The position numbers were made by a program, and so were the translations under genes. This document shows positions 1-26,933 of a stretch of 64,000 bases of DNA, in pieces. Location: positions 1 to 64,000 of the forward strand of contig OX337234.1 in the NCBI GenBank assembly GCA_946965045.2. Direction: 5' to 3'. The notes beneath the pieces are model-generated. The model was not told where the DNA came from, did no database searches, and saw nothing but the letters and a program-made list of their open reading frames with translations. Position 1 is the stretch's first letter. Every line of letters starts with the position of its first letter. The stretch comes from Epithemia pelagica. Taxonomy: Eukaryota; Protista; Bacillariophyta.

Positions 1-539
1 CCTAACCCTAACCCTAACCCTAACCCTAACCCTAACCCTAACCCTAACCCTAACCCTAACCCTAACCCTAACCCTAACCCTAACCCTAACCCTAACCCTA
101 ACCCTAACCCTAACCCTAACCCTAACCCTAACCCTAACCCTAACCCTAACCCTAACCCTAACCCTAACCCTAACCCTAACCCTAACCCTAACCCTAACCC
201 TAACCCTAACCCTAACCCTAACCCTAACCCTAACCCTAACCCTAACCCTAACCCTAACCCTAACCCTAACCCTAACCCTAACCCTAACCCTAACCCTAAC
301 CCTAACCCTAACCCTAACCCTAACCCTAACCCTAACCCTAACCCTAACCCTAACCCTAACCCTAACCCTAACCCTAACCCTAACCCTAACCCTAACCCTA
401 ACCCTAACCCTAACCCTAACCCTAACCCTAACCCTAACCCTAACCCTAACCCTAACCCTAACCCTAACCCTAACCCTAACCCTAACCCTAACCCTAAACC
501 CAACCCTAACCCTAACCCTAACCCTAAACCTAACCCTAA
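1..539 (+). repeat. Telomeric repeat array (CCCTAA)n; left chromosome end
   Basis: Uninterrupted CCCTAA repeats from base 1, with two variant units (CCCTAAACCCAA, CCCTAAACCTAA) near 495-535. Confidence 0.99.
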
Positions 540-3500
540 GCATTCAAACACAAATCGCAAAATACCATCTTATACTCCATTCAAATATCCATAAGACACA
601 TCCATTCCGTATCATGTCGCACATTCACATCTCACTCCTTTTCCCACACAAAATACAAGCATACTATTTTGTCTTTTTCACTAAGTAGTTTTCGAAGCTT
701 ATAGGTTAGCTCTAGCCTTGTTTTCGGCAATGAACTCCATGAATGTGATTGTTGAAGCATACACACGTGAAATGCAATCCTCCATGGAATGAAATTTTTT
801 CTGACTCACATGGAAGATCAGAAGTCGTTTCAATCGTGATTGGACTGGACAATCCACCATGTCATGGACAGTATATCCTGGACGATCGTGCATGTCCATA
901 CACTTGAAGCATATTTTAGAGGCAAAGTGTCTCTTCAAAAAAGTACCAAATTTACATTGTCGTCGAAAGTGGGGACCTCCACAGTTGAAACATCGCTCAG
1001 TCATACACTGCTGACCATTGCATGAGGTCTTTCCACACACCAAACACTTCTCTTTCATTATACCCAACACCAAGAGTGCTTCATTGACCACTTTGTTCTC
1101 ATTGTCAACTTGGTTCTGCATGTGCTCACACATCTGGGATACGGAATGACTATTTGTCTCATCCAAGCAGTAGTCACAGACCCGGCATGATTCACGTTTG
1201 GATCCAAATGCCGCCGCTAGAGAAACAATCTGACATGTGTCTTTTTGAGTCTCCCACTCCAAGAGTCCTCGCATAGTTGCAATGGATGTGTAGGATTGTT
1301 TGAAAGAATCATGAACAAGTTTCATTTCCTTGAGCTTTCTGTATATGATCATGTCTTCCTCATGAATGGAACGCTCCTGAGACACTCCCTCGGGATTAGC
1401 AAAGATTGTGAAACTGGACAAACTCATTCTTTGTTTCGGCCGAAGACGTCCAACAGCTTGCATGATGGATATCAAAGAGAACAAATGGCCAACCACAATG
1501 ACAGAGTGACATCTCCCATTCTCGTTGCCAACCAGGGCCACAGTAGTCGATACCAAGATAGGAAACCGAGCTGCTGCCCACTCCTTTGCAATTCGATGTT
1601 GCTCAGCCGTAGGTGATTCGGAGGTCACAAACTCCACGGTACCAAAATTCAATTTCTGAATGGCCTCTGTTACTTCTTGTCCAATCCACTTTGTTGAGAC
1701 AATAATATGCATTGCATACCTCATGGGAGTATATTTATTCATGGTCGAAGTCACAAAAAGAAGCAAGCTCTGTAAAATTTTGGGACGAATGACAATAGAG
1801 AACCTGAAACTCTTTGGGAAAGTTCCCAAAACATTCTCTGCATATCCGATTGTCATATCTTTGAGATCTTGTCTTTGAGTCATTGACATGTATCGCATAA
1901 GACTTGGCAATAAAAACCGTGGGAGGGACCCACTCAAGGTCATGACGGGCACTCCGTAGCGAACAAGACGTGGAAGGCAATCAAATTTGGACCGAAAGGA
2001 AAGCTCCGAGTAAATTGTGTGAACCTCATCAATTATGATTTTGGCCAAAGCTGACTTCTCCACCCACTCTTCTATAGTAGAGGAATGATATTTCTCCAAC
2101 ATCCATATGGCCTCGAGACTGAAGAAAACAATGTCTGGCAACATTTTGAAGTCATGGAGACCATCAGGCAGTCGGTCTGCTGTAACTTGATTGCCCGAAA
2201 CTGTCATGGAAGACACTTCCACACCTGATGGCAAGTTGCGTGATACTTGTTCTTCATGGTAACCGGATAAAAATTTGTAGGGCACGACTACCATATAGGT
2301 CTTGGGAGCCAAGTGATGTAGCTTGGCTCCTACCACCGGGACTAACCATGATAGTGACTTGCCACCTCCACATGGTAAACCAAAGTGTCCATGACATGTG
2401 CTTTCTCTCGATGCAAAAGCCAACATGGCGTGTTGTTCAGAACACGTGTATGTGGCACTAGGCCCAAAGAGTTTGTGCAATGTCCTCAATATCTCCCCAT
2501 CCGTCAAGTCTCGTTTCATGGTCACTGATTCTTTCCCAACAGACTTTTCACCCAGTGCTTTATGATATGTCTCGAACAAGTCTTCTTTTGCAGCTACATT
2601 GCTTGACCCATAATGGTCACGATGTGTTATGAGGCTGTGACCTGACTGTTCAGCCACAGTCTTGGTTGTGTACTGATTCTGGATCGACATTTCATCAAAC
2701 TCTGGGAAAAGAATATTAGAGATTGATGTCCACAAGTGCCTTACTTGGGTGCAATCCGGTCGGTTTTCGAAGCCAAAGATTGTTGCCACAGCATCGGTCA
2801 TCTCGTGTACCCTGTTATTTCTCACTGGTACAAGTCTCCGCAAGTCATGCTTCAGCTGTGACTGAAGGTGTTGACATACAACTCTGAAGACCAAAAATAT
2901 GCGTCCAAGTGACTTGGGTAGCTTGTGTTCAACAAGCTTTCCAGGTTTGTTGTTGAGTGCAGTGTATCCTTTCTCGGTGTGACTGTAATAGTAGCATTGT
3001 TGGCCATGCCAACGAATGCTACTAAACAGACACCTTTCAATTTCTGCATATCGCATGGAGCCCAACCCTGTTCCGTGGAATGCAAGTTCCAAGAATGATG
3101 CCAGAATATCAACAGATGTTGCATTGAAGGCATGGTGCACTTGAATCACTTCAGATGTTATGATAGAAGATTCTTTCTTGACCTGAAGAGACACCAATCC
3201 AGAAGATGGAACCAAATTGACGTACAAGTGCAAATTTAGGTTGAGGAAATCAGTCCATTGGTCACCAACCAGAAGAGTTCTGAAAGATGAAAAACACTTT
3301 TCTTCAATACATGGTACAACATTCGTCCAAATATCAAATTTAAAAAGGAAGTTGTCAACCAATATATCGTTTGTGGTTCGAATGGACACTTTCCGGGAAG
3401 ATGGCATAAGTGCTTCTTTTTCGCGCATGCGTCGAATGCAACTTGCCAAGAAATTGATTGTTATGGATTCCTGTGCCCGTTTTACTAGAGTCAAGGCCTG

Positions 3501-5165
3501 TTGAGAATAATCTTTGTCCATTTTGTAGATCAAGGAACATATACTCGCCCTTAGAATGGTGAGCAGAGCGGAATACATTGTTGCGATACGTGATGGGCCC
3601 AGTACGGACAATGACCCTGCGGTGTCCTTATGCCGCAAAGTCCGGCCAACCGCATAAGTCATGAGCATAGTATGGTGCCTGACAGAGTCAGGTGTCTCGA
3701 GACACAGATCAACAAGTAATGACTGTAAGTCACATTCTCTCTTCATCATGGATGGCTGCTGCTTGTGGATGAAGCACAACAATTTCTTGAGCTCTGGAAC
3801 AAGTCGGTTTGGAAACTTGGTGAATGTATAGGTCGTATTTGCTCCAGCATGTGACCCACTTTCCCTTGTACCATCAAATACCAAAAGCTTCGACCGAAAA
3901 TTTGCTGGGACCATTTTCACATGAATTGGAGCGCCATGCAACAACCACTTCTCTCCAAAATCATAGAAAAACTTGAGTATGGGTTCGTTGACTTCATCTT
4001 TGCCGGTAGTGGTTGTCAGAGAAAGCAAATTTTCCATCCGTTCTTGAAAGGTTGCTCCATCTGGCTTGGAAGAGTAGTGTTCCTCCTGAGCCAATGGATG
4101 AAACAAAGGAACAAAACAATCAACCATCTCCTCAGATACCATATGGAAAGTTTGGGTGACCGCTCTCTTTGTTTTCAAGATTGGATCTTCTTGGGAATAT
4201 TTCATACTGACAGCAGTCATAGATACCAGCCTCCCACAAGAAGTGACTTGTAATTGTTCCCTCTCAGGCCCAATGGCTCCACAGGAGTTAGGCGAGGAGA
4301 GATGACGCATAACATTGCTGAGTCTTGTCCAACCAACAAGACACCTGCAGGAATATCCAAGAACAGACCTCCCCGTGAAGAAGTTTTTTGCGGTATGAGG
4401 GTCTTCTTGCAAAATTTGCTCAAGGGACTGTTTTCTTGCAACAAGGAGTCGGTTGTCAGTTGCTGAGACACAGACTCCATGTTGATTTAGATGTCGCTGC
4501 ATCGACCAAAGACTTTCTCCGAATGATTTCTTGCATATGCCGCATCCCATACCAAAGGGTGTCACAATTGTAGCATCTAAACATGACAAGCCAATGCCCT
4601 GATCGGAACGGATCTTCTTCACCGGCCGTCTCCGGGATGGAGATGGCGTTCCAGGCCCATTGTTGGTAGCCATTGCTGGTTTCTTCGTGTGCATGGAACA
4701 GAGGAAGAGACATAACCAGCCGACTCTCAAGCAAAAGCAAGGATGGGCCTCTTTGCAAGAGTCATAATTCATGAAACAACAATGACCTTTTGTTGGGCCA
4801 ATTGAGGTTTTCAGGTGAAGATGTTGGGCCTATTGAGGTTTTCAGGTGAAGATGTTTGGCGCGAACGGGCACGCAGGCGAGCTTTTCGCGCCAAAGAATG
4901 GGGGAACAACTAAGAGTGCGGTAATGGTTGGTAATGAATGAAATGAAGGACTCATATTGAATATGAGTGCTTAGAAATTAGACTTGAGCGGGGCATAGAC
5001 ATTCTGTGCTCATCTGCACAAGGGGCAGTGCTCTTTTGCAACAAAAGGCATATATATCAGTGCTCATATGCACAGATACTATAGCCCCTTGTGCTCATAT
5101 GCACACGTTCAAATCCTACGGTGTCTAGTACTAAAGACACCCAAAAAAGGCAAATATCCTTAGGG
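540..5165 (-). mobile_element. Complete telomere-linked tyrosine recombinase-helicase element, subfamily A (unit 1)
   Basis: Abuts the telomere and carries an intact long ORF. Its proximal end ...CAAATATCCTTAGGG (5151-5165) recurs at 13593-13607, and a close variant occurs at 9591-9605. Confidence 0.85.
699..4673 (-). CDS. Zn-finger / tyrosine recombinase-like / RecQ-like SF2 helicase / Zn-knuckle fusion protein (telomere-linked helicase-like)
   Basis: Helicase motifs: LPCGGGKS (I), VVVPYKFL (Ia), IIDEVH (II), TLSGSLP (III), ILVSTTVALVG (V), QAVGRLRP (VI), plus a RecQ-like Zn site C..CRVCDYC. YR-like motifs: GSMRYAEI, HTEK, TQVRH, SGHS..T...HYG. CCHC knuckle CFNCGGPHFRRQC. Start placed at MATNNGPG (4673) by homology to the paralog start MASPSNNGPG; the ORF track starts at 4772. 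Confidence 0.9.
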   Translation of the reverse strand: MATNNGPGTPSPSRRRPVKKIRSDQGIGLSCLDATIVTPFGMGCGICKKSFGESLWSMQRHLNQHGVCVSATDNRLLVARKQSLEQILQEDPHTAKNFFTGRSVLGYSCRCLVGWTRLSNVMRHLSSPNSCGAIGPEREQLQVTSCGRLVSMTAVSMKYSQEDPILKTKRAVTQTFHMVSEEMVDCFVPLFHPLAQEEHYSSKPDGATFQERMENLLSLTTTTGKDEVNEPILKFFYDFGEKWLLHGAPIHVKMVPANFRSKLLVFDGTRESGSHAGANTTYTFTKFPNRLVPELKKLLCFIHKQQPSMMKRECDLQSLLVDLCLETPDSVRHHTMLMTYAVGRTLRHKDTAGSLSVLGPSRIATMYSALLTILRASICSLIYKMDKDYSQQALTLVKRAQESITINFLASCIRRMREKEALMPSSRKVSIRTTNDILVDNFLFKFDIWTNVVPCIEEKCFSSFRTLLVGDQWTDFLNLNLHLYVNLVPSSGLVSLQVKKESSIITSEVIQVHHAFNATSVDILASFLELAFHGTGLGSMRYAEIERCLFSSIRWHGQQCYYYSHTEKGYTALNNKPGKLVEHKLPKSLGRIFLVFRVVCQHLQSQLKHDLRRLVPVRNNRVHEMTDAVATIFGFENRPDCTQVRHLWTSISNILFPEFDEMSIQNQYTTKTVAEQSGHSLITHRDHYGSSNVAAKEDLFETYHKALGEKSVGKESVTMKRDLTDGEILRTLHKLFGPSATYTCSEQHAMLAFASRESTCHGHFGLPCGGGKSLSWLVPVVGAKLHHLAPKTYMVVVPYKFLSGYHEEQVSRNLPSGVEVSSMTVSGNQVTADRLPDGLHDFKMLPDIVFFSLEAIWMLEKYHSSTIEEWVEKSALAKIIIDEVHTIYSELSFRSKFDCLPRLVRYGVPVMTLSGSLPRFLLPSLMRYMSMTQRQDLKDMTIGYAENVLGTFPKSFRFSIVIRPKILQSLLLFVTSTMNKYTPMRYAMHIIVSTKWIGQEVTEAIQKLNFGTVEFVTSESPTAEQHRIAKEWAAARFPILVSTTVALVGNENGRCHSVIVVGHLFSLISIMQAVGRLRPKQRMSLSSFTIFANPEGVSQERSIHEEDMIIYRKLKEMKLVHDSFKQSYTSIATMRGLLEWETQKDTCQIVSLAAAFGSKRESCRVCDYCLDETNSHSVSQMCEHMQNQVDNENKVVNEALLVLGIMKEKCLVCGKTSCNGQQCMTERCFNCGGPHFRRQCKFGTFLKRHFASKICFKCMDMHDRPGYTVHDMVDCPVQSRLKRLLIFHVSQKKFHSMEDCISRVYASTITFMEFIAENKARANL

Positions 5166-8100
5166 ACAATTTGACAACGAATGAGACTGGTACCCTGGTC
5201 TCTCATGATAATCGAGACACTTGTAGCAAATCCTGCCTTTGTAATGGTTAGTCAAGAAATCACTGAACCGACAGTCCCTTCGAAAATGGTCTCCCCCACA
5301 ATTGAAACAACCCTTCGTCAAACAGGCATCACCTTGGCATTCTCTCCGACCACACACAAGACATCGTTCCTTCAAAGTTATTAAGACAAGCATAGCATCA
5401 TTTACTTGCGTAGTACGAATCTCTTCCTTTTGTTTGGCTTGGCTTCCAACTACTTGTACAGGGATCATTTTTTGCCTTCCAATACATACGTCACATACGT
5501 TGCACTGTTCGTACGTCGAGCCAAATTTGCCAGCCAAAGATACAACCCGACACTTCCCTCTCTCAGTCTCCCAGTCCACAAGACCTTTTATGGTTCCAAT
5601 TTGCATGTAATCTTGTTCGTTACTGGTATCAATAACACCAAGCTCTCTCAACCGATGGAAGTTCATCATATCCTCCTTCTCCATTGCCGCTTGTTGTGTT
5701 GATGATAATTTGTTTGCAAATATCACAAAGGATGAAGTCCCAGTACGTTGTTTGGGACGAAGTCTTCCCAGTGCTTGAACCACAGACATCAAGGAAAACA
5801 AATGGCCAACCACGACCACACAATGGCACTTTGGATTCTCGTTGCCCACCAATGCCACTGTTGAAGAAACTAGAATTGATATGGCTGAAGCCGACCATCT
5901 CTTGGCAATATCACGTTGCTTGCTCGTTGTTGTCTCCGATGTTACGAACTCCACGGGACCAAGGGACATTTCTTCCAAACTTGCAACAACATCCATCCCA
6001 AGCTGCTTGGAAGCAACAATGACATGAATCCCATGTCCCAATCGAGTAAAAGAGTTCATGGTGGATTGAATAAAATCTTTGAATTTGTAACGAATAGCGA
6101 CATCAACCACTACCGAGAACCGAAAACCAGATGGGAAGGAACCCAAAACCCTGTCGGAGTGCGAGATTGTCATGTCATCCAAGGTCCCCTTAGATAAGGC
6201 CAAATATTTCATTAATGGGGGAAGAAATCTCCGTGGCAAAGAACCACTCAAGGTCATAATGGGCACTTCATATTTTGCCAACCGAGGCAAACATTCCAAT
6301 CGTGTACGAAACCCAATTTCTGAGTAAATAGTGTGAATCTCATCCACAATGATCCTTCCCAGCTTTCCCGCCGTCACCCACTCTTTTAGAATGAACGAGT
6401 GATTTCGTTCCAACACCCAAATTGCATCCAAGCTCATGAAGACGACATCGGGAAGGTTCTTCATGTCAGAAATGACATCTGGTAATTCACCCAATGAGAA
6501 ATCAGATGCTGTCAAAGTCACTGATCTGACATCAACTTTAGTCTGTTTCGCTGTAGATATCATACTCTCGTCATGATATCCCGCCAGGAATTTATAGGGA
6601 ACAATGACTAGTGTTGTCTGTTGTTTGGTTCCATACAACCTCACCCCGGTTGTTGGCAAAATCCATGACATTGATTTACCCCCTCCACACGGCAAGCCAA
6701 AGTGACCATGTCTCTCATATTCCGAGCAAGTGTAGTGCAACATGTCCCGCTGCTGGTCGCAAGTGTAATTTGCAGCAGGCCCAAATAGTTTACGTAATGT
6801 GAGTAGTATCTGTTCGTCACTGAGTCCCTTCGCAATGACTGTCTCTTTCTGAACCAATTTTTCTCCCAAAGCCTTGTGGTATATCATGAACAACTCCTCT
6901 TTCGTGTTTCCGGATAGAGATCCATAATGATCTCTATGGGTCCAATAACTATGACCCGACTGCTCTGCGACCATCTGAGTAGTATGCTGGTTATGTATTG
7001 CTGTCTCATCCACCTGGGGAAAAAGTACATTGGACACAGATGTCCACAAATGCCTGATTTGTGTACAGTCCGGACGATCCTCAAACCCAAAGATGGTTGC
7101 CACAGCATCACCCATGTAGAATGCCCGATTATTTCTCACAGGAACAAGGCAACCAAGAGATTCATGGCGAAGTTCACATAGCACTCGAAAGACCATGTAT
7201 GCTCGACTCAAGGTCGTGCAAAGTTTGTGCTCAATCAAATTTTTACCTTTGTGGTGAACACTGAACGCTTTTTCACTGTGTGAGTAGTAATACACACAGC
7301 CTCCATGCCACCGCACGTCAGAAAACAGGCTACGAGAAATTTCAGTGTATCGCATGGACCCCAAACCTGTTCCATGAAATGCCAATTCCAAATAGGAGGC
7401 AAAGACATCAATGTCGCAGAGATCATAGTCGTCCTGAAGAACAATATCCTCTTGGGAGTAATTTTTGTGACCCGATGCCAAAGTCATTGTTGTCTTGCCC
7501 CTAGAACTCCAACACACGAACAGTGGATATCGTCGATTCAGTAGATTCACCCAACGATTACCCTTGATCACCTTGCAAAGTGAAGCAACCAACTTGTCAA
7601 AGATGATCGGAATGACGTTCGACCATTTTTGAAACTTGAACATAAAACCATCAACAAGTATATTGTATTTGTCTTGAATGGACACTTTCCGTGAAGACGG
7701 TGTGAGCGACTCTCTCTCCCGCATACGCCGAATCGTACTTGCCAAAAAATTGACTGTGATGGAGTTTTGAACATTTTCCACCAGCCGAGAAGCTTTCTCA
7801 TGGTAGCCCCGTCCCATGAAGTATATCATTGAGCAAATACTGGCCCGAAGCATGGCCAAAATGGCTGACAGCATTGTCGCAATGTAGGAGGGACTCCAAA
7901 CAGAAAGTGTCTCTGAACCTTCTTGCCCCCGGACAACTCTCCCCGCGCAGTAGGTCATGACTGTGGTATGATGCTGAACAGAATCCACTGTTTCTAAACA
8001 CAGCTTTGCCAGTAAAGAGGGAATATCTCTAGTGAGTGGCAGAAGTTTGTGGTTGCTTTGACACAGGAACGAGAGCAATTTCTTGAACTCGGGGAGAAGT

Positions 8101-8954
8101 CTTTTGGGGTACGCAGTGAAGGTGAAAGTAGAAATCGCATTGGGACTTCTTGCTCCATCAAAGACCAACAGCCTTGATCGGTAATTTGCTGGAACCATCT
8201 GGACATGGAGGGCAGCCTGTGCTGTGAGCCAGTTTTCTCCTTGATGGTACAACAAATCAAAGAGTGGTTGATTGTCGATGATGTGTTTCAAGTTGATGGA
8301 GTCATATAAGAAATGCACTCGTTCCTTGAATGACCTTCCCTTGGGCCTGGATGGGTAAGGTTCGTCTTGGGCCAAGGGATGGAAAAGGGGTACGAAACAC
8401 CCCATCATATCGGGGAGTACATGAAGAGTTGCTTGTAGTTGTGTGCTTGTTTTGAGTGAAGGGGCTTCTTGACAGGAATACTTGATCTGTAATGCCTTGA
8501 GGGAAATCATACGGCCACAGGTACTGATTTGTAGCTCCTCTTCTGTAGGGGAGGGAGCACCGCAGGTACGACCCGAGGACAAATGTCTGTACACATTTTG
8601 AAGTTTCAAGCTCCCAACAAGACAATGACATGAATAGCCCTTGACCTTTTCCCCCGTCATATATTCAGAGACACTTGAAATGTCTTGCATAACACTTTGA
8701 AGGAGGGTCATTTGATGTTCTATCAGTGACTGGCTTTCAGAACGTGAGACAGACACACCATGGCCATTAAGGTGCCTTTGCATGGACCATAGACTGGTTC
8801 CGAACGGTTTCCCACATAGGCGACACCCCATACCAAAGGGGGTCACTAGCGTGACATCGACAGCCTGTAGTTTGTTCTCTTCCTTTTTTTTCTTCGTTGG
8901 TCTCCTCCTTGATGGAGAAGGAGTCCCTGGCCCATTATTAGAGGGGGAAGCCAT
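5160..8954 (-). CDS. YR-like/RecQ-like helicase fusion paralog, C-terminally truncated by about 48 aa
   Basis: Same motifs as unit 1 (GSMRYTEI, TQIRH, SGHSYWTHRDHYG, LPCGGGKS, IVDEIH, QALGRLRP). The stop TAA is supplied by the CCC|TAAGG junction, whereas the unit 1 protein continues beyond the equivalent CP. Confidence 0.88.
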   Translation of the reverse strand: MASPSNNGPGTPSPSRRRPTKKKKEENKLQAVDVTLVTPFGMGCRLCGKPFGTSLWSMQRHLNGHGVSVSRSESQSLIEHQMTLLQSVMQDISSVSEYMTGEKVKGYSCHCLVGSLKLQNVYRHLSSGRTCGAPSPTEEELQISTCGRMISLKALQIKYSCQEAPSLKTSTQLQATLHVLPDMMGCFVPLFHPLAQDEPYPSRPKGRSFKERVHFLYDSINLKHIIDNQPLFDLLYHQGENWLTAQAALHVQMVPANYRSRLLVFDGARSPNAISTFTFTAYPKRLLPEFKKLLSFLCQSNHKLLPLTRDIPSLLAKLCLETVDSVQHHTTVMTYCAGRVVRGQEGSETLSVWSPSYIATMLSAILAMLRASICSMIYFMGRGYHEKASRLVENVQNSITVNFLASTIRRMRERESLTPSSRKVSIQDKYNILVDGFMFKFQKWSNVIPIIFDKLVASLCKVIKGNRWVNLLNRRYPLFVCWSSRGKTTMTLASGHKNYSQEDIVLQDDYDLCDIDVFASYLELAFHGTGLGSMRYTEISRSLFSDVRWHGGCVYYYSHSEKAFSVHHKGKNLIEHKLCTTLSRAYMVFRVLCELRHESLGCLVPVRNNRAFYMGDAVATIFGFEDRPDCTQIRHLWTSVSNVLFPQVDETAIHNQHTTQMVAEQSGHSYWTHRDHYGSLSGNTKEELFMIYHKALGEKLVQKETVIAKGLSDEQILLTLRKLFGPAANYTCDQQRDMLHYTCSEYERHGHFGLPCGGGKSMSWILPTTGVRLYGTKQQTTLVIVPYKFLAGYHDESMISTAKQTKVDVRSVTLTASDFSLGELPDVISDMKNLPDVVFMSLDAIWVLERNHSFILKEWVTAGKLGRIIVDEIHTIYSEIGFRTRLECLPRLAKYEVPIMTLSGSLPRRFLPPLMKYLALSKGTLDDMTISHSDRVLGSFPSGFRFSVVVDVAIRYKFKDFIQSTMNSFTRLGHGIHVIVASKQLGMDVVASLEEMSLGPVEFVTSETTTSKQRDIAKRWSASAISILVSSTVALVGNENPKCHCVVVVGHLFSLMSVVQALGRLRPKQRTGTSSFVIFANKLSSTQQAAMEKEDMMNFHRLRELGVIDTSNEQDYMQIGTIKGLVDWETERGKCRVVSLAGKFGSTYEQCNVCDVCIGRQKMIPVQVVGSQAKQKEEIRTTQVNDAMLVLITLKERCLVCGRRECQGDACLTKGCFNCGGDHFRRDCRFSDFLTNHYKGRICYKCLDYHERPGYQSHSLSNCP

Positions 8955-9605
8955 TGTCGATAGAGGTTTTGCTGAGAGTGTTCAAGAGACATCTTTCATC
9001 GTTCATCAAAGAAAGGGAGTGATGACCCTTTGCAGAATTGCATTGGGCCCAATTTACTGGACGAATGATGGGTAGGTACAAAGACCTAGAGGCATAAACT
9101 AGGAATGGTCAAAATGGGATTTTGATGAGAACTAGTGATGGGTGGAATGAGATTTTTCTGTGAAATGCCAGCGTCATTTGGCGGGAAAAAAGATTGTACA
9201 AAAAAGTTAGTTGGTCATTTGTGTACAAATATATGTCACTCGTACACACATATTAGCTGGTTTGTTGTAACAAGGAAATTTTGTACAGCAAACCAAAGGA
9301 AATTCAATCTTACGTTGATTCTTCTATGTAGAGTAGGGCAAGACAAAAACCTAACTGGCAGAGCTCTGAAAAGTATTTGGCCAGTATAGAGCATATTGAA
9401 TATGACGGCTTTTCGGGAGTGGTCAAAGGGGCATAGACAAGGCCACTGCTCAATCGCAACAAAAGCATAACAAATTGCAGCTCATCCGCAACAAATCCTT
9501 GCTCATATGCAACAGGCACTATAGGATTTTGTGCTCATATGCACACGTTCAAATTCTACGGTCTCTAGTACTAAAAGCTCCCAAAAAAGTGAAATATCCT
9601 TAGGG
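5163..9605 (-). mobile_element. Subfamily B element (unit 2), truncated on its telomere-facing side by unit 1
   Basis: Terminus ...GAAATATCCTTAGGG is homologous to the subfamily A terminus. Its ORF ends exactly at the unit 1 junction. Confidence 0.85.
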
Positions 9606-12117
9606 CTTTGACTTTGACCATTTGATAGCTAGCCAAGAAGTTGTAGGGCACAAGAAACATGTTGGTCGAAGTCTTCAGTCCTCGAATGGATTCCACCAAA
9701 CAACGCACCAAGATGTTCATGGTTTTGCCCGATCCACAAGGTTGAAGCATAACTTTATGTCTTCCCGGTGAATTGGTGCACATATCAATTGCTCTTTCTT
9801 GATTGCCTCGGAATGTTGCCTCTTCATTACCCAACAACAATCGTAATGCTTCTAACCGATGCTGACGGCTTGTTATTGTCAGCTGATGGCATACCGAGTC
9901 CACGATCATACATTTGGTACCGATGTAACGATGAAATCAGGCATAGTAGATCTCATGACTGTTGCTCACGCGTGTCTGGTAGTTGGACATTGCAGTCTGT
10001 TGGGAGTGCTTACTCAACTCACTCAATGCTGTTGAAGAGACCAATGCCTGACTGTTGCTGTCTGGAAAGAGCAAGTTCACAAGAGAAGTCCAGAACTGTC
10101 GAACAACCACCGAACCAGGACGACTATCCAAGCTGAAAATCTCTTGGGCAACATCCTCAAAGAAAAACCTCCGGTCATTACCATATTGTGGAAAAAATCT
10201 CCTTGCATTGGGCCCATTCCAAACTTTCAGCACCACAACTCTGTAGAGAAATAGACACCTTGCTATGATCCGAGGCATCTTGTGTTCAACGGGGGGTCGA
10301 TCATAAGCTTGCAGTTTGGGTTGTTTACGACTCGGTGCAGAAACATATAAATCTTGGTAGTTTGTATTTTTCCACCGAAGCTGAGTCACATCGAGACAAT
10401 GGAACTCTGAGAACCGATCTGCACCACAGCCAAAACCATGGATGGCAAATTCCATCAAGGCAGTTAGTCGTTCGAACTGACTTTTCACCAGTTCCTTGCA
10501 TTCCAAATCTTGTGTGTTGGTACCATCTGGCAGCGATCCCAAACCCTTGGACCACTCCACAATAGTCAAGTCACCATCTAAGCAGAGGAATTTCTCGTAT
10601 GCCTTTCCGACAAAGCATGCATCAAAAATACCATGGGCCTTTTCCACAACCGTAGGAACGACCTTAGACCAATGTGCTTTTTGGAATGCATGTCCATCAA
10701 CAATGATATTGAAGAACTCATCGACCACAACCTCCCTTTTAGGAGGCTTCTCTTGATATTGCTTCCTCAAAGAATAAATCTTAGGACAGAGAAAGTGTAT
10801 TGTAGGACAATGTCTGTACCGTTCCATGACCTGCTCGACCAACTTGCCCTGCCCATCGTAGTATTTTAAGCCAGCCGCAACCCCACAGCAAAGCAGATGT
10901 AAAAGGTCAGCTAGAAAGAGATGAAAGAAGACATGAGATTTGAGCAACCAAGTATATTCATTGACAGGGGGAAAGGGGGACTCACCGAGTTCTTGAGCGG
11001 CAACTCCACATGATTTCAACCTCAAGCCATTCTTCGTCTTAGTGAACAACCTCTGCCGAGAGAACAGTAACACTACCCCTGAGTCGGACCAACAAGAAAT
11101 CTCACTGTCGAGTACCAACTCTGTCAGGAGTGACCCAAGAACACAATTTTGGAATGCAGTGTCCACAGAGAATCCATCACCTTCAACCAGGTGGCAAAAA
11201 TAGTCCCATCTCTTCCACTTCCTCTGATGCAGGAAACACAAGAGAGAGAGGAGTAGAGGTTTCACTCGTTTGTCATAATCATGTCGATGGCTGAAATTCC
11301 ATGAGTGATCCACATCACCATCATGGAAAGCAAACTTAGCAATCCGACTCCAAATGTCTGCTGGAATCCCCATTACGATCGAAGCCATCCTGTCCAGAAG
11401 GTAACAACCAACCTGATAGAGTCGGTTGATTGCAGTGTTATTTCCTCTCTTATGATACTCGGCTTCAAACATAATTCCTTGTTCAATGTCTCCAAGGGCA
11501 TTCTCCAACGTGCCAGGAATCATATTACTCAGTACATCGGGCCACCTTCCCAAAATGTCGCTTGGATGCAATAATGGTTCAATCGAACTTGCAAACTTGT
11601 TGGGTAACCTGCTGCAGGGCAACGACATGGTGAATATTGAATTCTCAACTTGAATTATTGGGGTCCAGTTGGTTTCTTGCTGCATGGTTTCTCTTTGGGG
11701 CCTTGGCATGAAGCATCCACACTTCAGCTTGAGGAAAGTCTTGGCAATGACTTTGGCACTAGCGCAACAACCAGCAACGTGCTTCTCGCACAAAAGCTTC
11801 ACATGAAACATCTTGTCACAGTCACTACAGAAATACTTGATTCTTGTATCATTTGACTCATGAATGAAACAATCAAACTGTTGGTTGTTGGCATTCTCCA
11901 CAAGAGTGTGTATTTTGTTACCAAGATGTCTCCCAGGAAAGCGAAAGGACACCCCATGAATTTTGGAGCAGGTCTTGGCGTGGCGGGCAAGACACTTCAT
12001 GTTTGCTCGGAAACCACCACCACAGAGCTTACACACCAAGCCACAGGGTGTGGCAAAGTCCACAAGCCCCAAGTAATCGTCAAACTCCATTGTGGCTGTT
12101 GTCGTTCCTATGGTCAA
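9603..12117 (-). pseudogene. Diverged YR-like/helicase gene with a predicted 75-nt intron, an in-frame nonsense codon and a 3' truncation
   Basis: YR-like motifs GADRFSEF, VVRQFW, SKHSQQTAMSNY; helicase motifs QPCGSGKT and FLVPYNFL. ORFs 9937-12117 and 9571-9909 share a frame and are separated by a single TGA at 9937-9939. Predicted intron GTGAGT...TTTCTAG at 10911-10985. Confidence 0.8.
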
Positions 12118-12449
12118 AATAGGTTTGGGACGTATGACCCTTTGCAGCCAAAAAAGAGGCCCTAAAGAGGGTCATTCACCTCAAAAACTGAAAAGGCCCT
12201 AACACCAGAGATCATTCACCTCAAAATCTTTGAGCGACAAGAAGGAATATGGTTTACTATGGAGAGTTAATGTAGGTTTGCAAATCGACCTTCTTGTGGT
12301 CGAAATCGACCTTTTTGTGGTCGCACTAAAATTTCGCACGCAACAATACAGTGATTCAAAATTGACCTTTTTGTGGTCGCGCATGTGATTCTACAGAATG
12401 AACTTAGTGCGCACGACAAAAAGGTCGATTTCTAGCAAAACCCTTAGGG
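9603..12449 (-). mobile_element. Subfamily C element (unit 3), truncated within the helicase domain by unit 2
   Basis: Distinct terminus ...CTAGCAAAACCCTTAGGG, identical to the one at 15855-15872. The gene breaks off shortly after helicase motif Ia at the 9603 junction. Confidence 0.85.
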
Positions 12450-13607
12450 TTCGTTGACTTCATCTTTGCCGGTAGTGGTTGTCAGAGAAAGCAAATTTTC
12501 CATCTGTTCTTGAAAGGTTGCTCCATCTGGCTTGGAAGAGTAGTGTTCCTCCTGAGCCAATGGATGAAACAAAGGAACAAAACAATCAACCATCTCCTCA
12601 GATACCATATGGAAAGTTTGGGTGACCGCTCTCTTTGTTTTCAAGATTGGATCCTCTTGGGAATATTTCATACTGACAGCAGTCATAGATACCAGCCTCC
12701 CACAAGAAGTGACCTGTAATTGTTCCCTCTCAGGCCCAATGGCTCCACAGGAGTTAGGCGAGGAGAGATGACGCATAACATTGCTGAGTCTTGTCCAACC
12801 AACAAGACACCTGCAGGAATATCCAAGAACAGACCTCCCCGTGAAGAAGTTTTTTGCGGTATGAGGGTCTTCTTGCAAAATTTGCTCAAGGGACTGTTTT
12901 CTTGCAACAAGGAGTCGGTTGTCAGTTGCTGAGACACAGACTCCATGTTGATTTAGATGCCGCTGCATGGACCAAAGACTTTCTCCGAATGATTTCTTGC
13001 ATATGCCACATCCCATACCAAAGGGTGTCACAATTGTAGCATCTAAACATGACAAGCCAATGCCCTGATCGGAACGGATCTTCTTCACAGGCCGTCTCCG
13101 GGATGGAGATGGCGTTCCAGGCCCATTGTTGGTAGCCATTGCTGGTTTCCTCGTGTGCATGGAACAGAGGAAGAGACATAACCAGCCGACTCTCAAGCAA
13201 AAGCAAGGATGGGCCTCTTTGCAAGAGTCATAATTCATGAAACAACAATGACCTTTTGTTGGGCCAATTGAGGTTTTCGGTTTTCAGGTGAAGATGTTTG
13301 GCGCGAAGGGGCACGCAGGCGAGCTTTTCGCGCCAAAGAATGGGGGAACAACTAAGAGTGCGGTAATGGTTAGTAATCAATGAAATTTAGGACTCATATT
13401 GAATATGAGTGCTTAGAAATTAGACTTGAGCGGGGCATAGACATTCTGTGCTCATCTGCACAAGGGGCAGTGCTCTTTTGCAACAAAAGGCATATATATC
13501 AGTGCTCATATGCACAGATACTATAGCCCCTTGTGCTCATATGCACACGTTCAAATCCTACGGTGTCTAGTACTAAAGACACCCAAAAAAGGCAAATATC
13601 CTTAGGG
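12447..13607 (-). mobile_element. Subfamily A fragment (unit 4): 5' 1.16 kb only
   Basis: Near-identical to 3981-5165 apart from scattered substitutions and a small indel in the leader. ORF 12444-13238 is cut at ...NEP by the unit 3 junction. Confidence 0.9.
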
Positions 13608-14401
13608 TGATCGATTGCTGTTGTTGCTGCTGCTGTTGTTGTTGTTTGTTATGGTGTGTTGGGTGGAGGTGGAGGGAGATGAATGAGCATCGATTCTGGT
13701 GGTCGTTGATTGTTGAATGACTAGTATGCTAGGTTGTTCGGTTTTGTTCGATGGATCACAGTGTCGAGTTGGTAATCCCCGCGGTTTGGGTGATTGGGAA
13801 GGAGGATCCATCTGAGACATTCTTTGGGACATCCATGTGCGTCAGTCTTTCTGGCAGCTGCTGTGTGATGTGGTGGGAGTGGAAATTCGTGATTCAAAGG
13901 TGAGGGGACAGACGCTTGCGCATGAGGGTTGCGTCATGCGCGTCTCGGGGGGGTCGAGCGCGCCAGATAGTTGTAGTGCGCATTATCGGAGTGTGGCGCG
14001 CGTTATTCGTGGTTTGATCGCGGGCTTGTGCGCATTAAAATTGTTGCATGCGCGTGATAGTTAGCTCGATCTCTAGAACTAGCTAGAGAAATGTGCATTG
14101 TTAGACCTAGATTTGCAGATTTAGTTGGGAAAGCAGGATTATAGTCAAAAACTGCGCATATAAAAATAAACTGCGCATAAAAAATTTTAATTCGGCGAAT
14201 TTTTTCTAGAAATTTGCTTTTGGGGGTGGAAATCAAGCGCCAGGGCCCATTTCCCTCCTTAGATGATATAGGTCGATATAGCGCGAAGCTAGGGAACATA
14301 GCTCGAAGCTAGATGGCATGATGCGATAGCACGAGGCTATGTGACATGGGGAATCGATGAGATGTAGAATCTAACCACCATAGACGGTGAGAATTCTAAC
14401 A
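13605..14401 (-). mobile_element. 5' fragment of an unrelated element (family D) with a TGTTAG terminus, truncated by unit 4
   Basis: Minus strand starts TGTTAGAATTCTCACCG, followed by a CGCG-rich leader and a short ORF (13602-13832) cut at the CCC|TAA junction. About 50 bp of the terminus is homologous to 63801-63851. Confidence 0.55.
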
Positions 14402-15872
14402 GACTCACCGAGTTCTTGAGCGGCAACTCCACATGATTTCAACCTCAAGCCATTCTTCGTCTTAGTGAACAACCTCTGCCGAGAGAACAGTAACACTACC
14501 CCTGAGTCGGACCAACAAGAAATCTCACTGTTGAGTCCCGACTCTGTCAGGAGTGACCCAAGAACACAATTTTGGAATGCAGTGTCCACAGAGAATCCAT
14601 CACCTTCAACCTGGCGGCAAAAATAGTCCCATCTCTTCCACTGCCTCTGATGCAGGAAACACAAGAGAGAGAGGAGTAGAGGTTTCACTCGTTTGTCATA
14701 ATCATGTCGATGGCTGAAATTCCATGAGTGATCCACATCACCATCATGGAAAGCAAACTTAGCAATCCGACTCCAAATGTCTGCTGGAATCCCCATTACG
14801 ATCGAAGCCATCCTGTCCAGAAGGTAACAACCAACCTGATAGAGTCGGTTGATTGCAGTGTTATTTCCTCTCTTATGATACTCGGCTTCAAACATAATTC
14901 CTTGTTCAATGTCTCCAAGGGCATTCTCCAACGTGCCAGGAATCATATTACTCAGTACATCGGGCCACCTTCCCAAAATGTCGCTTGGATGCAATAATGG
15001 TTCAATCAAACTTGCAAACTCGTTGGGTAACCTGCTGCAGGGCAGCGGCATGGTGAATATTGAATTCTCAACTTGAATTATTGGGGTCCAGTTGGTTTCT
15101 TGCTGCATGGTTTCTCTTTGGGGCCTTGGCATGAAGCATCCACACTTCAGCTTGAGGAAAGTCTTGGCAATGACTTTGGCACTAGCGCAACAACCAGCAA
15201 CGTGCTTCTCGCACAAAAGCTTCACATGAAACATCTTGTCACAGTCACTACAGAAATACTTGATTCTTGTATCATTTGACTCATGAATGAAACAATCAAA
15301 CGGTTGGTTGTTGGCATTCTCCACAAGAGTGTGTATTTTGTTACCAAGATGTCTCCCAGGAAAGCGAAAGGACACCCCATGAATTTTGGAGCAGGTCTTG
15401 GCGTGGCGGGCAAGACACTTCATGTTTGCTCGGAAACCACCACCACAGAGCTTACAGACCAAGCCACAGGGTGTGGCAAAGTCCACAAGCCCCAAGAAAT
15501 CGTCAAACTCCATGGTGGCTGTTGTCGTTCCTATGGTCAAAATAGGTTTGGGACGTATGACCCTTTGCAGCCAAAAAAGAGGCCCTAAAGAGGGTCATTC
15601 ACCTCAAAAACTGAAAAGGTCCTAACACCAGAGATCATTCACCACAAAATCTTTGAGCGACAAGAAGGAATATGGTTTACTATGGAGAGTTAATGTAGGT
15701 TTGCAAATCGACCTTCTTGTGGTCGAAATAGACCTTTTTGTGGTCGCACTAAAATTTCGCACGCAACAATACAGTGATTCAAAATTGACCTTTTTGTGGT
15801 CGCGCATGTGATTCTACAGAATGAACTTAGTGCGCACGACAAAAAGGTCGATTTCTAGCAAAACCCTTAGGG
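14402..15872 (-). mobile_element. Subfamily C fragment (unit 5): 5' 1.47 kb
   Basis: Near-identical and colinear with 10979-12449, with the same CCCTTAGGG terminus joined to different flanking DNA. Interrupted at the start of the predicted intron by family D. Confidence 0.9.
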
Positions 15873-16342: not shown

Positions 16343-18136
16343 TTGCCACTTCATATTACCATACTCCCATTCTGTCGAAAGAGCAACTTCTGTTTGAACA
16401 TGTCTTCTCTCATCCAGGAATTCATTCCCGACGTAGATGCTCCTCCCTTCTACTCTTCCATTTTTCATGACTCTTTCCAAATGGGTTCATTCGTACACTT
16501 GATCCAACCATCCCAAGATCCCAAGACCACGACGGTTGTTCGACTACTCAAATGGATTCCCCATGGAATCAAAGTACAAATTTTCTACCCTCTGTTCCCG
16601 AAGGAGAAACTTCGATGCCATCCCAATCCCCCGAAACACAACAAGATACCACTACCAACAGCTCAAGGACGCAACAATATCGAACTCTACATGTCGAACG
16701 AAGTGATGGAATTGATCAATCCTCGAGAAGATGGATTGCCGTTGCGCCTTCGGGAGATTTTTTATCCTGCTTTTGTCTTTTCTCTCACTGATCTTGACTC
16801 ACCAGCCAACCGATGGGCCTACGGAGTAGAAAATGTATTTGTGGTCCGATACAAGCAGCATTCTGAGCGAGGTTTGGTTCCTATCCCAGAGAATTGCTTA
16901 AGATTCATGGTTTCTCACGACACAACACGTTCACATCTTATTTGTCCTCCCCGTTCTTGTCATCTCAATATTTGGACAGGACTATTTCTCATTCGCAAAG
17001 CAATCTCGAAGATGCTGAATCGTCGTTCCGGTCAGGCAGAGGAGAAAGAAACCAACGCTCTGACTATTGGGCACATTCCTGTGGAGACTTACAACTACAT
17101 CAGTCTCCTATTGTCTCGTGCTCACCGTTCAAGATGTGTCCACAAGCCATTCAAGGCCTCCGAAACTTATCTTGATATCACGAATAGATTTACACGTCGC
17201 AAATCCAGAATCCAGTTCGAGTCAGGCGTCATTCGGTTTGCGACTAAAGCGGATCTTGACAAGCTTAGGACCATCATGGGATTTGGTTCTACGTATGGAT
17301 CTACGGAAATACGCCCGACCTTGTATCACGGGGATAAAGGTTTGTCTCTCAAGCGCGGCCATTCTCTGACGATTATTGCTGGAGGACCAGTCCCTGAAGA
17401 ACCCGTTCCATTCAAGAAGCGCACGAAGGAACAACGTATAGAATTGTCATTCTCTCAATTCAGTTGCCGTGTTACGGTATCCTTCCAACGATATCTTTAT
17501 GACACCTCTAGAGCTGGTGTCATCAAAGTCCCTCCCCCGACGACTCATTTGGAGTTGACCTTGAAAGGTCAGCTCCCGTTACTCAATCATGCTCCCCAGG
17601 TCAATGACAATGCTCCACAAGACAACGAAAACCTGCCGTCCCCCGTACCGAAGAGACGCGTTCCCGAATATATTCAAGTTGGCCTAATTACTCCGACAGG
17701 CAGTCCACGGGCTTCTCCCCAACCCAGCCTTAGGGACAGTCCTGAGCGCACTACAGAAGATGTTGTGCCCGAACACTCCTCTGCCATAGACCCCAGTGAC
17801 CTCTCTATTATCCAAGGAGAACAGTTTCATCTCGAAGACACTGTTTGGGAGGTTTTGGACATCTTTTCACCCAAAGATGTTTCACGGACTGTGTTGTTAG
17901 AGGTAAATACTGGCGACCTTTACACAACACGAAAACCCGAACCACCAGGCGGTTTTGATTTTCCCGATGATGAAATCCGAATGTTGGGGACGATCCCAGC
18001 CAGTGAAACATACCACATCGCTATTGGAGCATGTGCCGGCGAAGAATATGATGACAGGAAGCCACACTGTCAACAGAAGACAAAGATTCTCGAGTTGACA
18101 GACGAAGTACATGAAGCTATTCGTAACTATCGTTGA
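16343..18136 (+). CDS. Hypothetical protein convergent with the Transib/RAG1-like gene
   Basis: 597-aa ORF with a non-repetitive, protein-like composition. Its stop lies 56 bp from the stop of the opposite-strand transposase gene. No family recognised. Confidence 0.65.
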   Translation: MPLHITILPFCRKSNFCLNMSSLIQEFIPDVDAPPFYSSIFHDSFQMGSFVHLIQPSQDPKTTTVVRLLKWIPHGIKVQIFYPLFPKEKLRCHPNPPKHNKIPLPTAQGRNNIELYMSNEVMELINPREDGLPLRLREIFYPAFVFSLTDLDSPANRWAYGVENVFVVRYKQHSERGLVPIPENCLRFMVSHDTTRSHLICPPRSCHLNIWTGLFLIRKAISKMLNRRSGQAEEKETNALTIGHIPVETYNYISLLLSRAHRSRCVHKPFKASETYLDITNRFTRRKSRIQFESGVIRFATKADLDKLRTIMGFGSTYGSTEIRPTLYHGDKGLSLKRGHSLTIIAGGPVPEEPVPFKKRTKEQRIELSFSQFSCRVTVSFQRYLYDTSRAGVIKVPPPTTHLELTLKGQLPLLNHAPQVNDNAPQDNENLPSPVPKRRVPEYIQVGLITPTGSPRASPQPSLRDSPERTTEDVVPEHSSAIDPSDLSIIQGEQFHLEDTVWEVLDIFSPKDVSRTVLLEVNTGDLYTTRKPEPPGGFDFPDDEIRMLGTIPASETYHIAIGACAGEEYDDRKPHCQQKTKILELTDEVHEAIRNYR

Positions 18137-25212: not shown

Positions 25213-26933
25213 TTAGTCTTGGGATTGAGTTCTCAAAAACTCTTCCATGGACGCCCACGACGACGACGATGCTGCTGGTGCGGGTGATGGTGACGGAGGC
25301 GGCAATCCCCCGCCATTGGCCGTGACGGCACCATTGGTCGTTGCACCATTGCTGTTGGTCTGCACCACACGGTCCCAGAGCGACGTGGCCGAGGCGGCGG
25401 CCGTTTTACTGTCGGCCAAGACGGATCGTTCCGAATAAAAGAGCGCATGTTGGGGAAGGACGGGTTTTACAGCACGTCCATTGTCGCCCGGTTGCCAGGA
25501 TTGAATTTCCGTACACCAATTGAAAATTTTGTCACAAAAGGCTTGCATGGGCAAGACGGTAAAGGGTTCTTCCAGTTGCGTGCCAATTTCTTCAATGCCA
25601 AACAACATGGTGGAAATGACCACCATGGTGGGAATCATGGCCACATGATTCCACGACGGAGCAAAGGCTTCGTACAATCCAAAGGGTAGGAGCAACAACC
25701 AGACGGCCAAGAAGCGGGCCAAATGCCGCGAATAAAACAATGGGACGGGACTGGTCAAGATGCGTTCGGAACTGCCCAAATTGTCTTCAAAGATACTGAC
25801 GGCGCGATGAATTTCATTTTTTCGCAAGTAATGCATGGGCAAATCTTCAATGGCATAGGACAAATCTTGCAGGGCGCGATTGGGTCGATGGGCGGCTTGG
25901 ATAATGGCTTCAGCCTGTTGGGTGGGCAACTTTTGGTAGAGTTCTTGACAAAAGTCAACCTCATCTTCTTCGGTCGGACTCAAGTGTCGTTTCATGCTTC
26001 GGACAAAGGCCCAGGTACATTCGGCCACATGGGTCAAATCGGCCTGACGTTGTTCCGGACTCACACCCGTACTGTCGTAATAGGCATTGGCCATGCGATT
26101 CAAGTTACGGGTGTGATTAATGTTCATTCCCCAATTCTTGCGGGCTTCGTCCCATCGTTGATAGGACGTGTTGGTACGAAAGACTGTGTGTGGTAGGTAT
26201 TAGGTAAGTATGTTGGTAGGTAGAAGCCAGGAACACGATTGAACGACGACGACGACGACAAGAGTAGTAGAAACCACAAACAGAGAAAGAACGCATTGGT
26301 GTAAGACAAACACTGTATTGGAGACAAGAACAACAAACACAAACCAACACAACCCACACACACACCATCGTGAGTAAACGTACCCAACAAGAGTCCGAGC
26401 GACGGACTGGTCAAGGTAAAGGAGGCGAGGGGCAATCCGAGTTTGGGCAAGTATTGCGATTGCAAAAGGGCGGGTTGGACGACGCCCTCCAAATTGGTGT
26501 ATCCCCCGACCAGGGCATTGTAGGCACAGACAAAGACGGCCACGGCCGTCGTCAAGGCCACTTCGCGGCCCAAATTTTTGTAGACACCACTACTAAAAAT
26601 GGCTTGCAAATACCAAATAAATCGATCTTGACTGCGATGCTTTTTCCAATCGTCATGACTGTAGACGGTGCGACGAAATTTGCGTTGGCCTTCGCCCGAT
26701 GGCAAATCCGTCAGGGTACGCAAGCGTTCAAAACTATCCCATCCGGTACTGGTAAAGGATTGCTGTTGCGCCGTTGGAGGAGGACTGTTGTGATTGGGCT
26801 CTCGCTTTTTCAAGGACGAGGGATTGGAGGAGGTGGGAAGAGACGTTTGGGTGGCACCCGGTGGCAACACAAAGGCCGAGCAGGACACGGTGGTCCACAC
26901 CGCCACGAGGAGGAGGAAAAGCCACGCTTTCAT
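25213..26933 (-). CDS. Bestrophin-like (UPF0187/VCCN-type) anion channel, predicted plastid-targeted (exons 26384-26933, 25213-26183)
   Basis: Signal peptide followed by SAFVLP. The spliced sequence reads SLGLLLVFRTNTSYQRWDEARKNWG; also contains GIEEIGTQLEEPF. Intron 26184-26383 is GT...AG. Confidence 0.9.

Follow-up and report, generated by a model that had tools for sequence, protein, structure and literature searches.

A telomere-adjacent array of predicted recombinase-helicase elements with one fixed end in Epithemia pelagica, and its possible origin by replacement of chromosome ends

The stretch of DNA analysed here, which we call the window, comprises the first 64,000 nucleotides of the forward strand of contig OX337234.1 in an assembly of Epithemia pelagica (GCA_946965045.2). 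The 519-kb contig belongs to a eukaryotic chromosome whose telomeres are of the TTAGGG type, and the window begins at the left end of that chromosome: positions 1–539 hold about 90 copies of (CCCTAA)n on the plus strand, with degenerate repeats at the border to the first of a series of related elements. Self-comparison of the window, together with the listing of its open reading frames (ORFs), resolves this series into five units, named A, B, C, A' and C', which follow one another inward from the telomere in this order, with an unrelated segment (X) between A' and C' and chromosome-unique DNA past position 15872. All five units lie on the minus strand in one shared orientation, with their ORFs reading towards the telomere; the protein that they encode is, as set out below, a predicted fusion of a tyrosine recombinase and a RecQ-type helicase.

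Unit A (540–5165) is complete as to its ORF, has its fixed terminus at 5158–5165, and adjoins the telomere with its 3' end. Unit B (5166–9605) is the first 4444 nt of a 5856-nt element, which the terminus of A cuts short at a CCCT; unit C (9606–12449) is a 5' portion 2844 nt long, ended in the same way, at a CCCT, by the terminus of B. Unit A' (12450–13607) is the first ~1185 nt of a copy of A, cut by the terminus of C at a CCC site that corresponds to A 3981–3983; the GGG at these three positions means that the C/A' junction has a microhomology of 3 nt. Unit C' (14402–15872), finally, is the first 1471 nt of a copy of C, and its terminus is joined to the chromosome-unique DNA at 15872/15873. 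The proteins of B and C are ~51% and 26–27% identical to that of A; at the DNA level A' matches A 3981–5165 at 97%, and C' matches C 10979–12449 at 99%. The truncated ORF of B (5160–8954) runs into the terminus of A and ends at its TAA (TGT CCC TAA, window 5160–5165), so that the incoming terminus provides the stop codon for the ORF it cuts. Unit C may also contain an intron of 75 nt.

On the plus strand, the end of every unit reads CCTTAGGG. This sequence is found six times on the plus strand of the window and not at all on the minus strand, compared with an expectation of 0.88 from shuffled sequences, none of which (0/100) contained six or more. Five of the six sites, ending at 5165, 9605, 12449, 13607 and 15872, are the exact points where unit homology stops, and the proposal of an initial annotation that five units share one orientation and a precise common terminus is thus borne out by self-comparison, by the ORFs and by the presence of CCTTAGGG at all five boundaries. 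The sixth site (17728–17735) is probably a chance occurrence: it lies within an unrelated ORF (16343–18136, plus strand), no unit homology starts there, and ~0.9 sites are expected. The same annotation had placed A' directly against C'; in fact A' adjoins segment X (13608–14401), which is 794 bp long, is unrelated to the units, and is the target of the A' terminus. As a consequence, a cut at the GGG is demonstrated for three neighbouring elements, not four, the fourth claimed cut falling away because X intervenes. In the sense orientation X begins with TGTTAG right after a GTGAGT-like site of C', and it may be the edge of another transposon that inserted into C' and was later cut by A'. Neither X nor the DNA proximal to the array matched anything elsewhere among the loci that we fetched.

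Read in the sense direction, the anatomy of an element is 5'-CCCTAAGG, family-specific subterminal repeats, one large ORF, a loosely defined 3' region, and then (TTAGGG)n. In the fixed end of A (5003–5165, minus strand), the terminal CCCTAAGG of the sense strand is accompanied by a TGTGC-CATATG-GCACA-like motif in four subterminal copies, which are candidates for binding by the recombinase. Conservation between A and B reaches 87% in this fixed end, as against ~68% for the coding region. Unit C instead has subterminal repeats of the AAATCGACCTTTTTGTGGTCG type at 12279–12440, and each of the terminus families, of which there are at least eight (A, B, C, C2, D, E, F and H), has its own short subterminal repeat beside the common terminus. 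The only sequence that all families have in common is positions 1–7, (C)CCTAAG, which corresponds to one inverted telomere repeat. Distant relatives at two loci from unrelated ocean or environmental metagenomes (L007 and L013) likewise begin to align exactly at CCCTAAGG. A conserved terminal structure was also considered, and was dropped in favour of the family-specific repeats since single-strand folding of five termini gave no common hairpin. In the 5' untranslated regions of C and C', single TTAGGG units (sense strand) are found inside a direct repeat of the AAGAGGCCCTAA type (12160–12165, 12197–12202 and 15583–15588); these may be sites for telomere-repeat-binding proteins.

The ORF of A (699–4772, minus strand) encodes 1357 amino acids (aa) that contain, in order, N-terminal C2H2-like motifs, a domain with the predicted fold of a tyrosine recombinase, a RecQ-fold helicase, a Zn subdomain and CCHC knuckles. 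In this protein Pfam detects DEAD above and Helicase_C below the cut-off, both within aa 800–1110, and NCBIfam yields a weak match to a RecQ Zn region. Searching 1.84 billion cluster representatives (clusters at 50% identity) with a profile of A, B and C retrieved 695 relatives at this level of clustering, 204 of them at E ≤1e-30; many are 1200–1600 aa long and span the whole profile, many come from ocean metagenomes, and those examined carry names no more specific than a generic helicase label. Protein homology searches with a single protein, with a C-terminal piece and with a 35-sequence profile gave matches from the window's own genome only.

The tyrosine-recombinase-like region (aa 300–770; 2463–3875, minus strand) was found by fold search alone. 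Its AlphaFold2 (AF2) model has a predicted local distance difference test score (pLDDT) of 88, and in a Foldseek search of the PDB the top 27 matches are Cre or its variant Tre (probability 0.84–1.0, best E 8e-4), followed by XerH, XerA, topoisomerase IB and Flp; the region resembles solved recombinases with their two-domain fold of a core-binding and a catalytic domain. The template modelling (TM) scores are low (0.28–0.38), probably because the two domains are oriented differently. The candidate catalytic residues are R574, K601, R678, H712 and Y721: when aa 300–770 are aligned for 57 relatives, the first four are invariant and Y721 is nearly so, and all five are invariant in 35/35 full-length relatives, which are 22–51% identical to A. 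In A the distance from R to K is 27 residues, from R to R 104, and from H to Y 9; an H-to-Y spacing of 9 and an R-to-R spacing of ~100 agree with those in Cre, XerD and lambda Int.

The C-terminal half is the RecQ-fold helicase (aa 740–1357; 702–2555, minus strand), with the Walker A motif GxGK805, DEVH915–918, four Zn cysteines and the C-terminal CCHC knuckles. Its AF2 model (pLDDT 93) finds exclusively RecQ family structures among the 50 best Foldseek matches listed (E 1e-17 to 1e-14), including RECQL1, BLM, RECQL5, WRN and bacterial RecQ, and the residues of Walker A, the DExH box and motif VI (GxGK805, D915/E916 and Q1105/R1109/R1111), the Zn cysteines C1180/1196/1199/1202 and the two CCHC knuckles are invariant in the 35 full-length proteins. 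The Cre-like fold, the invariant R-K-R-H-Y set and the C-terminal RecQ fold therefore support, at the level of predicted fold and catalytic residues, the identification as a tyrosine recombinase-helicase that the initial annotation had proposed. The ratio of nonsynonymous to synonymous substitution rates (dN/dS) is 0.3–0.55 among complete B copies, and ranges from 0.29 to 1.0, tending higher, where truncated copies are compared. In distant relatives a second ORF of 230–315 aa stands just 3' of the recombinase-helicase ORF (L007 8080–9024; L013 6715–7605; L016 11561–12472; L017 14671–15360); it has no Pfam match and is absent from units A and B of the window.

To place the window among other chromosome ends of the same assembly, we retrieved seven further subtelomeres by cluster look-ups and contig retrieval (L001–L006 and L015), which gives 8 ends in all; the checkable predictions of the initial annotation were tested on these, and most of them held. 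On the seven, all copies face the nearby contig end; L001 and L002 have assembled telomeres, (TTAGGG)n, and the copies on L003–L006 and L015 are 0–30 kb away from contig ends. The simplest case is L002, where ordinary genes are followed by CCCTAAGG, one complete B of 5856 bp, and then the telomere, whereas at L004 at least 12 junctions are stacked within ~12 kb. A telomere-ward ORF, which had been described for the units, holds throughout the window and fails for family D (L001 and L004): the D termini have a normal-looking CCCTAAGG and their own GTCCCACTGCAGAA repeats, and the helicase ORF comes after 524 nt in inverted orientation (L001 657–3919; L004 1530–2513), facing the terminus and pointing away from the telomere. 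On L005, ~1.17 kb of other DNA (8309–9478) separates positions 124 and 130 of a B copy.

Altogether the 8 ends have 33 junctions from at least eight families, and every one of them starts with (C)CCTAA; the B terminus alone is joined to 9 different targets, in agreement with the earlier observation that one terminus can be joined to more than one target. For 21 of these junctions an uninterrupted homologue of the junction-upstream sequence exists elsewhere, so that the empty target can be read. In these empty targets, C is found at position 1 in 19/21, at position 2 in 20/21 and at position 3 in 21/21, with the full CCC in 18/21; position 4 is A in 10, T in 10 and G in 1, and the positions after it are random. 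Given a background frequency of CCC of 1.1%, the chance probability of such a target motif is ~1e-32. Where the target deviates (ACC, CAC and GCC(TA)), the product retains the target's own bases, and from position 4 on it always has the TAAGG of the element. This places the exchange point at CCC^TAAGG, at one defined phosphodiester, as the initial annotation had proposed; exchange at a single defined phosphodiester is what would be expected of an enzyme. One target, positions 279–282 of C, was used twice independently, by an incoming C and by H.

The elements are one-ended. As had been claimed for the window, none of the junctions examined on the 8 ends has the lost distal part of the interrupted unit beyond the incoming one, and a search with the C-terminal third of B gave no orphan 3' fragments of B. 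The best match of this search (P0166) was considered as such a 3' remainder and rejected, because it belongs to a full-length copy of H that is divided by a frameshift or stop. At the other side, telomere repeats start at differing positions in A, in the B of L001 and in the B of L002, which means that the distal end of the element is not fixed. Complete B copies have a variable array of ~178-bp tandem repeats between ORF and telomere (L002 13972–15205; L001 13972–16664; L003 5724–8470 and 13972–18846), the repeat unit of which resembles the short 3' region of A; the telomere begins at differing points within this array. That only the unit touching the telomere is complete is true of the window but not of L003, which has an internal complete B. 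Furthermore, the composite B(1–4444)/A is present at two ends, in the window and on L004, with 0.6% divergence, and the DNA upstream of B differs between the two. The whole distal sequence thus moved along with an internal terminus, and the DNA was duplicated in the event.

Starting from what is observed, namely the element anatomy, the folds with their invariant residues, the target motif, the exchange point, the one-endedness and the duplication of composite arrays, we favour with moderate confidence the view that the units belong to the telomere-linked-helicase type, are autonomous DNA elements with one fixed end, and use their recombinase to replace chromosome ends. We infer that the joining is catalysed by the element's own recombinase, and the choice between exchange, copying and capture is likewise an interpretation. 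In the mechanism that we propose, the fusion protein would bind the subterminal repeats of the element, and its recombinase domain would cut and rejoin DNA at two places: the terminus, between CCC and TAAGG, and a CCC(A/T) in the neighbourhood of another chromosome end. The recipient would retain its DNA up to the CCC and acquire the element with all DNA distal to it through the telomere, its own distal DNA being lost. As merely 3–5 bp are shared, the joint would probably be completed by copying: a partial exchange might be followed by helicase-assisted copying to the end, similar to break-induced replication, with no full reciprocal exchange. Repeated rounds would pile up 5' fragments, the innermost being the oldest, and could so produce the array of the window. 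Crypton recombinases offer a precedent, in that a terminal motif of 5 bp is joined to targets almost identical with it and translocations arise between a copy and free sites (PMC9977147).

Several points weigh against this view. Recombinase activity is a prediction from the modelled fold and the conserved residues; the histidine of the HxxR motif is not conserved (T675 in A), and the domain was undetected by Pfam, by NCBIfam and by PDB phmmer and hmmsearch profiles, also when 57 members were scanned singly, which would make it a very divergent branch of the tyrosine recombinases. An identity of 3–5 bp is short for a complete tyrosine-recombinase exchange, and since tyrosine recombinases leave no 3'-OH for priming, an extra step has to be assumed for copying. 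Since the terminus mimics one telomere repeat, host end joining could use it just as well. Some junctions in the arrays do not follow the rule: X/C' has neither CCTTAGGG nor a CCC motif and lies at the GTGAGT-like site of C, and the junction near 8470 on L003 is also without the motif. There, the 178-bp repeats of the internal complete B are followed, with no CCC junction, by an internal fragment of another family (8457–9299, aa ~411–689), the only 5'-truncated fragment seen, which was later cut by a B terminus at 9350. In another organism (assembly ENA ERZ25039600), two relatives are internal, lying inside contigs of 59 kb and 100 kb, with a relic telomere tract after each: at L016 14019–14183 the tract has ~165 bp of TAGGG/CAGGG repeats, and at L017 15342–15391 there are about seven degenerate TTAGGG repeats running into inverted CCCTAA (GGGTTAACCCTAAC), with called genes flanking the element on both sides. 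L016 and L017 look like former chromosome ends that have acquired new distal DNA. Finally, our sample consists of 8 ends, known from assembly sequence alone.

The most serious alternative is repair by the host. A resected broken or eroded end would anneal by 3–5 nt (CCC, CCCT or CCCTA) to the ...TTAGGG-3' end of an element, the donor being a linear copy outside the chromosomes or a chromosomal one that is nicked or unwound, and microhomology-mediated end joining or break-induced replication would finish the joint; the encoded protein would merely prepare the donor end or aid telomere maintenance, without exchanging strands with the target. That every family has as its terminus exactly one unit of the telomere repeat fits this explanation, as do the junction overlaps of 3–5 nt, which are typical for microhomology joining, and the variable sites of telomere addition, which indicate that these ends erode and heal. 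The relic telomere of L017 meets inverted CCCTAA through the palindrome GGGTTAACCC, resembling an end-to-end fusion, and terminal truncation and capture are documented for fungal ends with telomere-linked helicase genes (PMC1635262). However, free ends that telomerase can extend should vary in their number of repeats, and exactly one repeat is found at 33/33 junctions. Simple annealing also does not predict the restriction to A or T at position 4 together with an invariant position 3 in spite of mismatches at positions 1 and 2, and it gives no account of the catalytic set that is invariant across relatives of ~25% identity, or of the family-specific repeats. We regard host repair as the less likely explanation, though one to be taken seriously.

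Clearly less probable, in our judgement, is a linear episome, a free, replicating molecule with a normal telomere at one end and a hairpin or minimal telomere processed by the recombinase at the other, the arrays being occasional captures. Telomere resolvases do belong to the tyrosine-recombinase/topoisomerase IB group, one of them having unwinding activity; the terminus placed against its own complement is a perfect palindrome; and the metagenome relatives assemble as contigs of 6–10 kb. Repeats in short-read assemblies, however, give short contigs in any case; the head-to-head palindrome (TAGGGCCCTA) is absent from all loci of the window's genome, no contig has CCCTAA repeats upstream of the terminus, and the termini of L007 and L013 are flanked by unrelated, non-telomeric DNA, so that these copies are integrated.

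Addition by reverse transcription, as in telomere-targeted retroelements (HeT-A/TART, SART/TRAS, MoTeR and the Penelope-like Athena/Coprina), we consider very improbable, although those elements also form head-to-tail arrays at chromosome ends in which older units are distally incomplete, and a terminus resembling a telomere repeat is known from the Athena type. The data contradict it: no reverse transcriptase was found in the ORFs scanned and no poly(A) is present; the polarity is also reversed here, the promoter-side 5' end being complete and the 3' end missing, and a transcript of the ORF could not hold a terminus that is located upstream of its own promoter. We give just as little weight to an assembly artefact or to plain segmental duplication of subtelomeres without a specific mechanism. 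Subtelomeres are difficult to assemble, and the B(1–4444)/A junction common to two contigs does mean that some junctions are copies of one event; but the 33 sharp junctions with distinct flanks on 8 contigs, from at least eight families and with a target motif of P ~1e-32, contradict this explanation, as does an identical terminus in unrelated metagenomes. Two-ended transposons, Crypton-like or other, nested in the subtelomere are the least probable of all: a tyrosine recombinase, a lack of target-site duplications and the frequency of nesting in repeat-rich subtelomeres would suit them, but the data contradict them: nesting leaves a distal half beyond the insert, and none of the junctions examined has such a half; the position of the 3' end varies; and all units run in a single direction relative to the telomere.

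An Rfam scan of positions 1–22000 of the window gave no match. Inward of the array the contig has ordinary genes, among them two ORFs for MatE transporters (22911–24359 and 36070–37734) and two of the bestrophin type (25213–26127 and 28774–29955), all inside 15 kb; these pairs of paralogues look like subtelomeric gene duplication. A large ORF with a hAT dimerisation domain (53333–56968) and an ORF weakly matching the CxC5 cluster of KDZ transposases (48202–51645) indicate that further transposons populate this subtelomere besides the recombinase-helicase units.

Among known systems, the closest are the telomere-linked helicase (TLH) genes of fungi and Monosiga, which are adjacent to telomeres with tandem repeats between gene and telomere, have a sharp proximal boundary to unique DNA and many truncated copies, and show presence/absence polymorphism between strains (PMC1635262; bioRxiv 10.1101/2024.02.27.582403; PMC7473861). 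Their proteins have two N-terminal C2H2-type motifs, a conserved domain of ~250 aa directly before the helicase, and a RecQ-type helicase (PMC1635262; bioRxiv 10.1101/2024.02.27.582403; PMC7473861), with no domain detectable beyond the helicase core according to one study (PMC7473861). The elements described here share the setting of the gene at the telomere, which we find for A of the window and for L001 and L002, and they resemble the TLH proteins in the order of their domains. Of the published C2H2 patterns, Cx2-3Cx8-14Hx3-5H and Cx2-5Cx11-16Hx4-5H (bioRxiv 10.1101/2024.02.27.582403), the first N-terminal motif of A (C77-x2-C80-x13-H94-x3-H98) fits, and the second (C142-x-C144-x12-H157-x6-C164) is similar to the published form but differs from it. 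From this architecture we infer membership in the TLH family, the comparison with the fungal and Monosiga proteins being one of published descriptions. A terminus of one CCCTAA repeat, a CCC(A/T) target and nested arrays of 5' fragments are, in contrast, not described in the TLH literature that we searched, and full-text literature searches found neither a recombinase fold for the TLH domain nor any link between tyrosine recombinases and telomere-linked helicases.

With Cryptons, which are known from fungi, stramenopiles, animals and Chlamydomonas, the elements share a eukaryotic tyrosine recombinase, the lack of a target-site duplication, and a short terminus that is near-identical to the target (here CCCTAA and CCC(A/T)). 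In Cryptons, a terminal CACCG recombines with a near-identical CAYCG target, and translocations and inversions occur between a copy and free targets (PMC9977147; PMC3212892). Cryptons are, however, two-ended (with direct repeats of 4–6 bp), interstitial, excisable and without a helicase, whereas here there is one fixed end, the telomere serves as the other, and the distal DNA of the target is lost, with no distal target half having been found. The Y' elements of Saccharomyces cerevisiae, long suspected to be relics of mobile elements, are similar in being helicase-encoding subtelomeric repeats whose head-to-tail arrays spread among chromosome ends. Y' copies have telomeric repeats of normal orientation between them, are usually full length and spread by homologous recombination; the arrays described here are instead nested 5' fragments with site-specific junctions, and no tracts in TTAGGG orientation occur between units in the window or on L001–L006.

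The telomeric retrotransposons (HeT-A/TART/TAHRE of Drosophila, the Penelope-like Athena/Coprina and MoTeR) resemble our elements in their successive end additions, in the distal truncation of older units and in attachment termini like telomere repeats, but theirs is an RNA-mediated process that encodes or needs reverse transcriptase and attaches the 3' end, whereas the ORFs that we scanned hold no reverse transcriptase and the polarity is opposite. The telomere resolvases (ResT, TelK and TelN) and the single-ended terminal elements of linear bacterial replicons are comparable in that an enzyme of the tyrosine-recombinase type acts at the end of a linear replicon, and in end replacement by a single exchange; ResT reportedly also has unwinding and annealing activities. 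The difference is that no hairpin or palindromic junction was seen here, and that the distal end is a conventional telomere of the telomerase type.

Telomere-adjacent helicase genes, i.e. the TLH genes of fungi and a choanoflagellate and the yeast Y' elements, have been known for more than 25 years, and we know of no agreed explanation for their telomeric location and their spread between ends. What was known already is the gene family and its telomeric habit; what appears to be new is the identity of the recombinase, a terminus precise to the base, the rule for the target, and the evidence for one-ended replacement of chromosome ends. The architecture of a known family makes the elements less categorically new, and at the same time gives the recombinase finding a broader reach. 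We speculate, with somewhat less confidence than we have in the mechanism for the present elements, that TLH genes in general, including this family, those of fungi and choanoflagellates, and perhaps the ancestor of Y', are an unrecognised class of one-ended mobile DNA that cuts at CCC^TAA and transplants element and telomere together, and that the TLH domain is a recombinase.

A recombinase domain, a terminus made of an inverted telomere repeat, and landing at CCC(A/T) with replacement of the distal DNA provide a testable mechanism for telomere-linked helicases. If it is true, chromosome ends would be replaced and capped at the DNA level by protein alone, through a recombinase with a 3–4 bp target working at chromosome ends, and eukaryotic mobile DNA would gain a class of one-ended elements that replace chromosome ends. 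Turnover of subtelomeres and loss of terminal genes would then have a source independent of reverse transcriptase, and spread by end replacement may explain why helicase genes are found beside the telomeres of many microbes.

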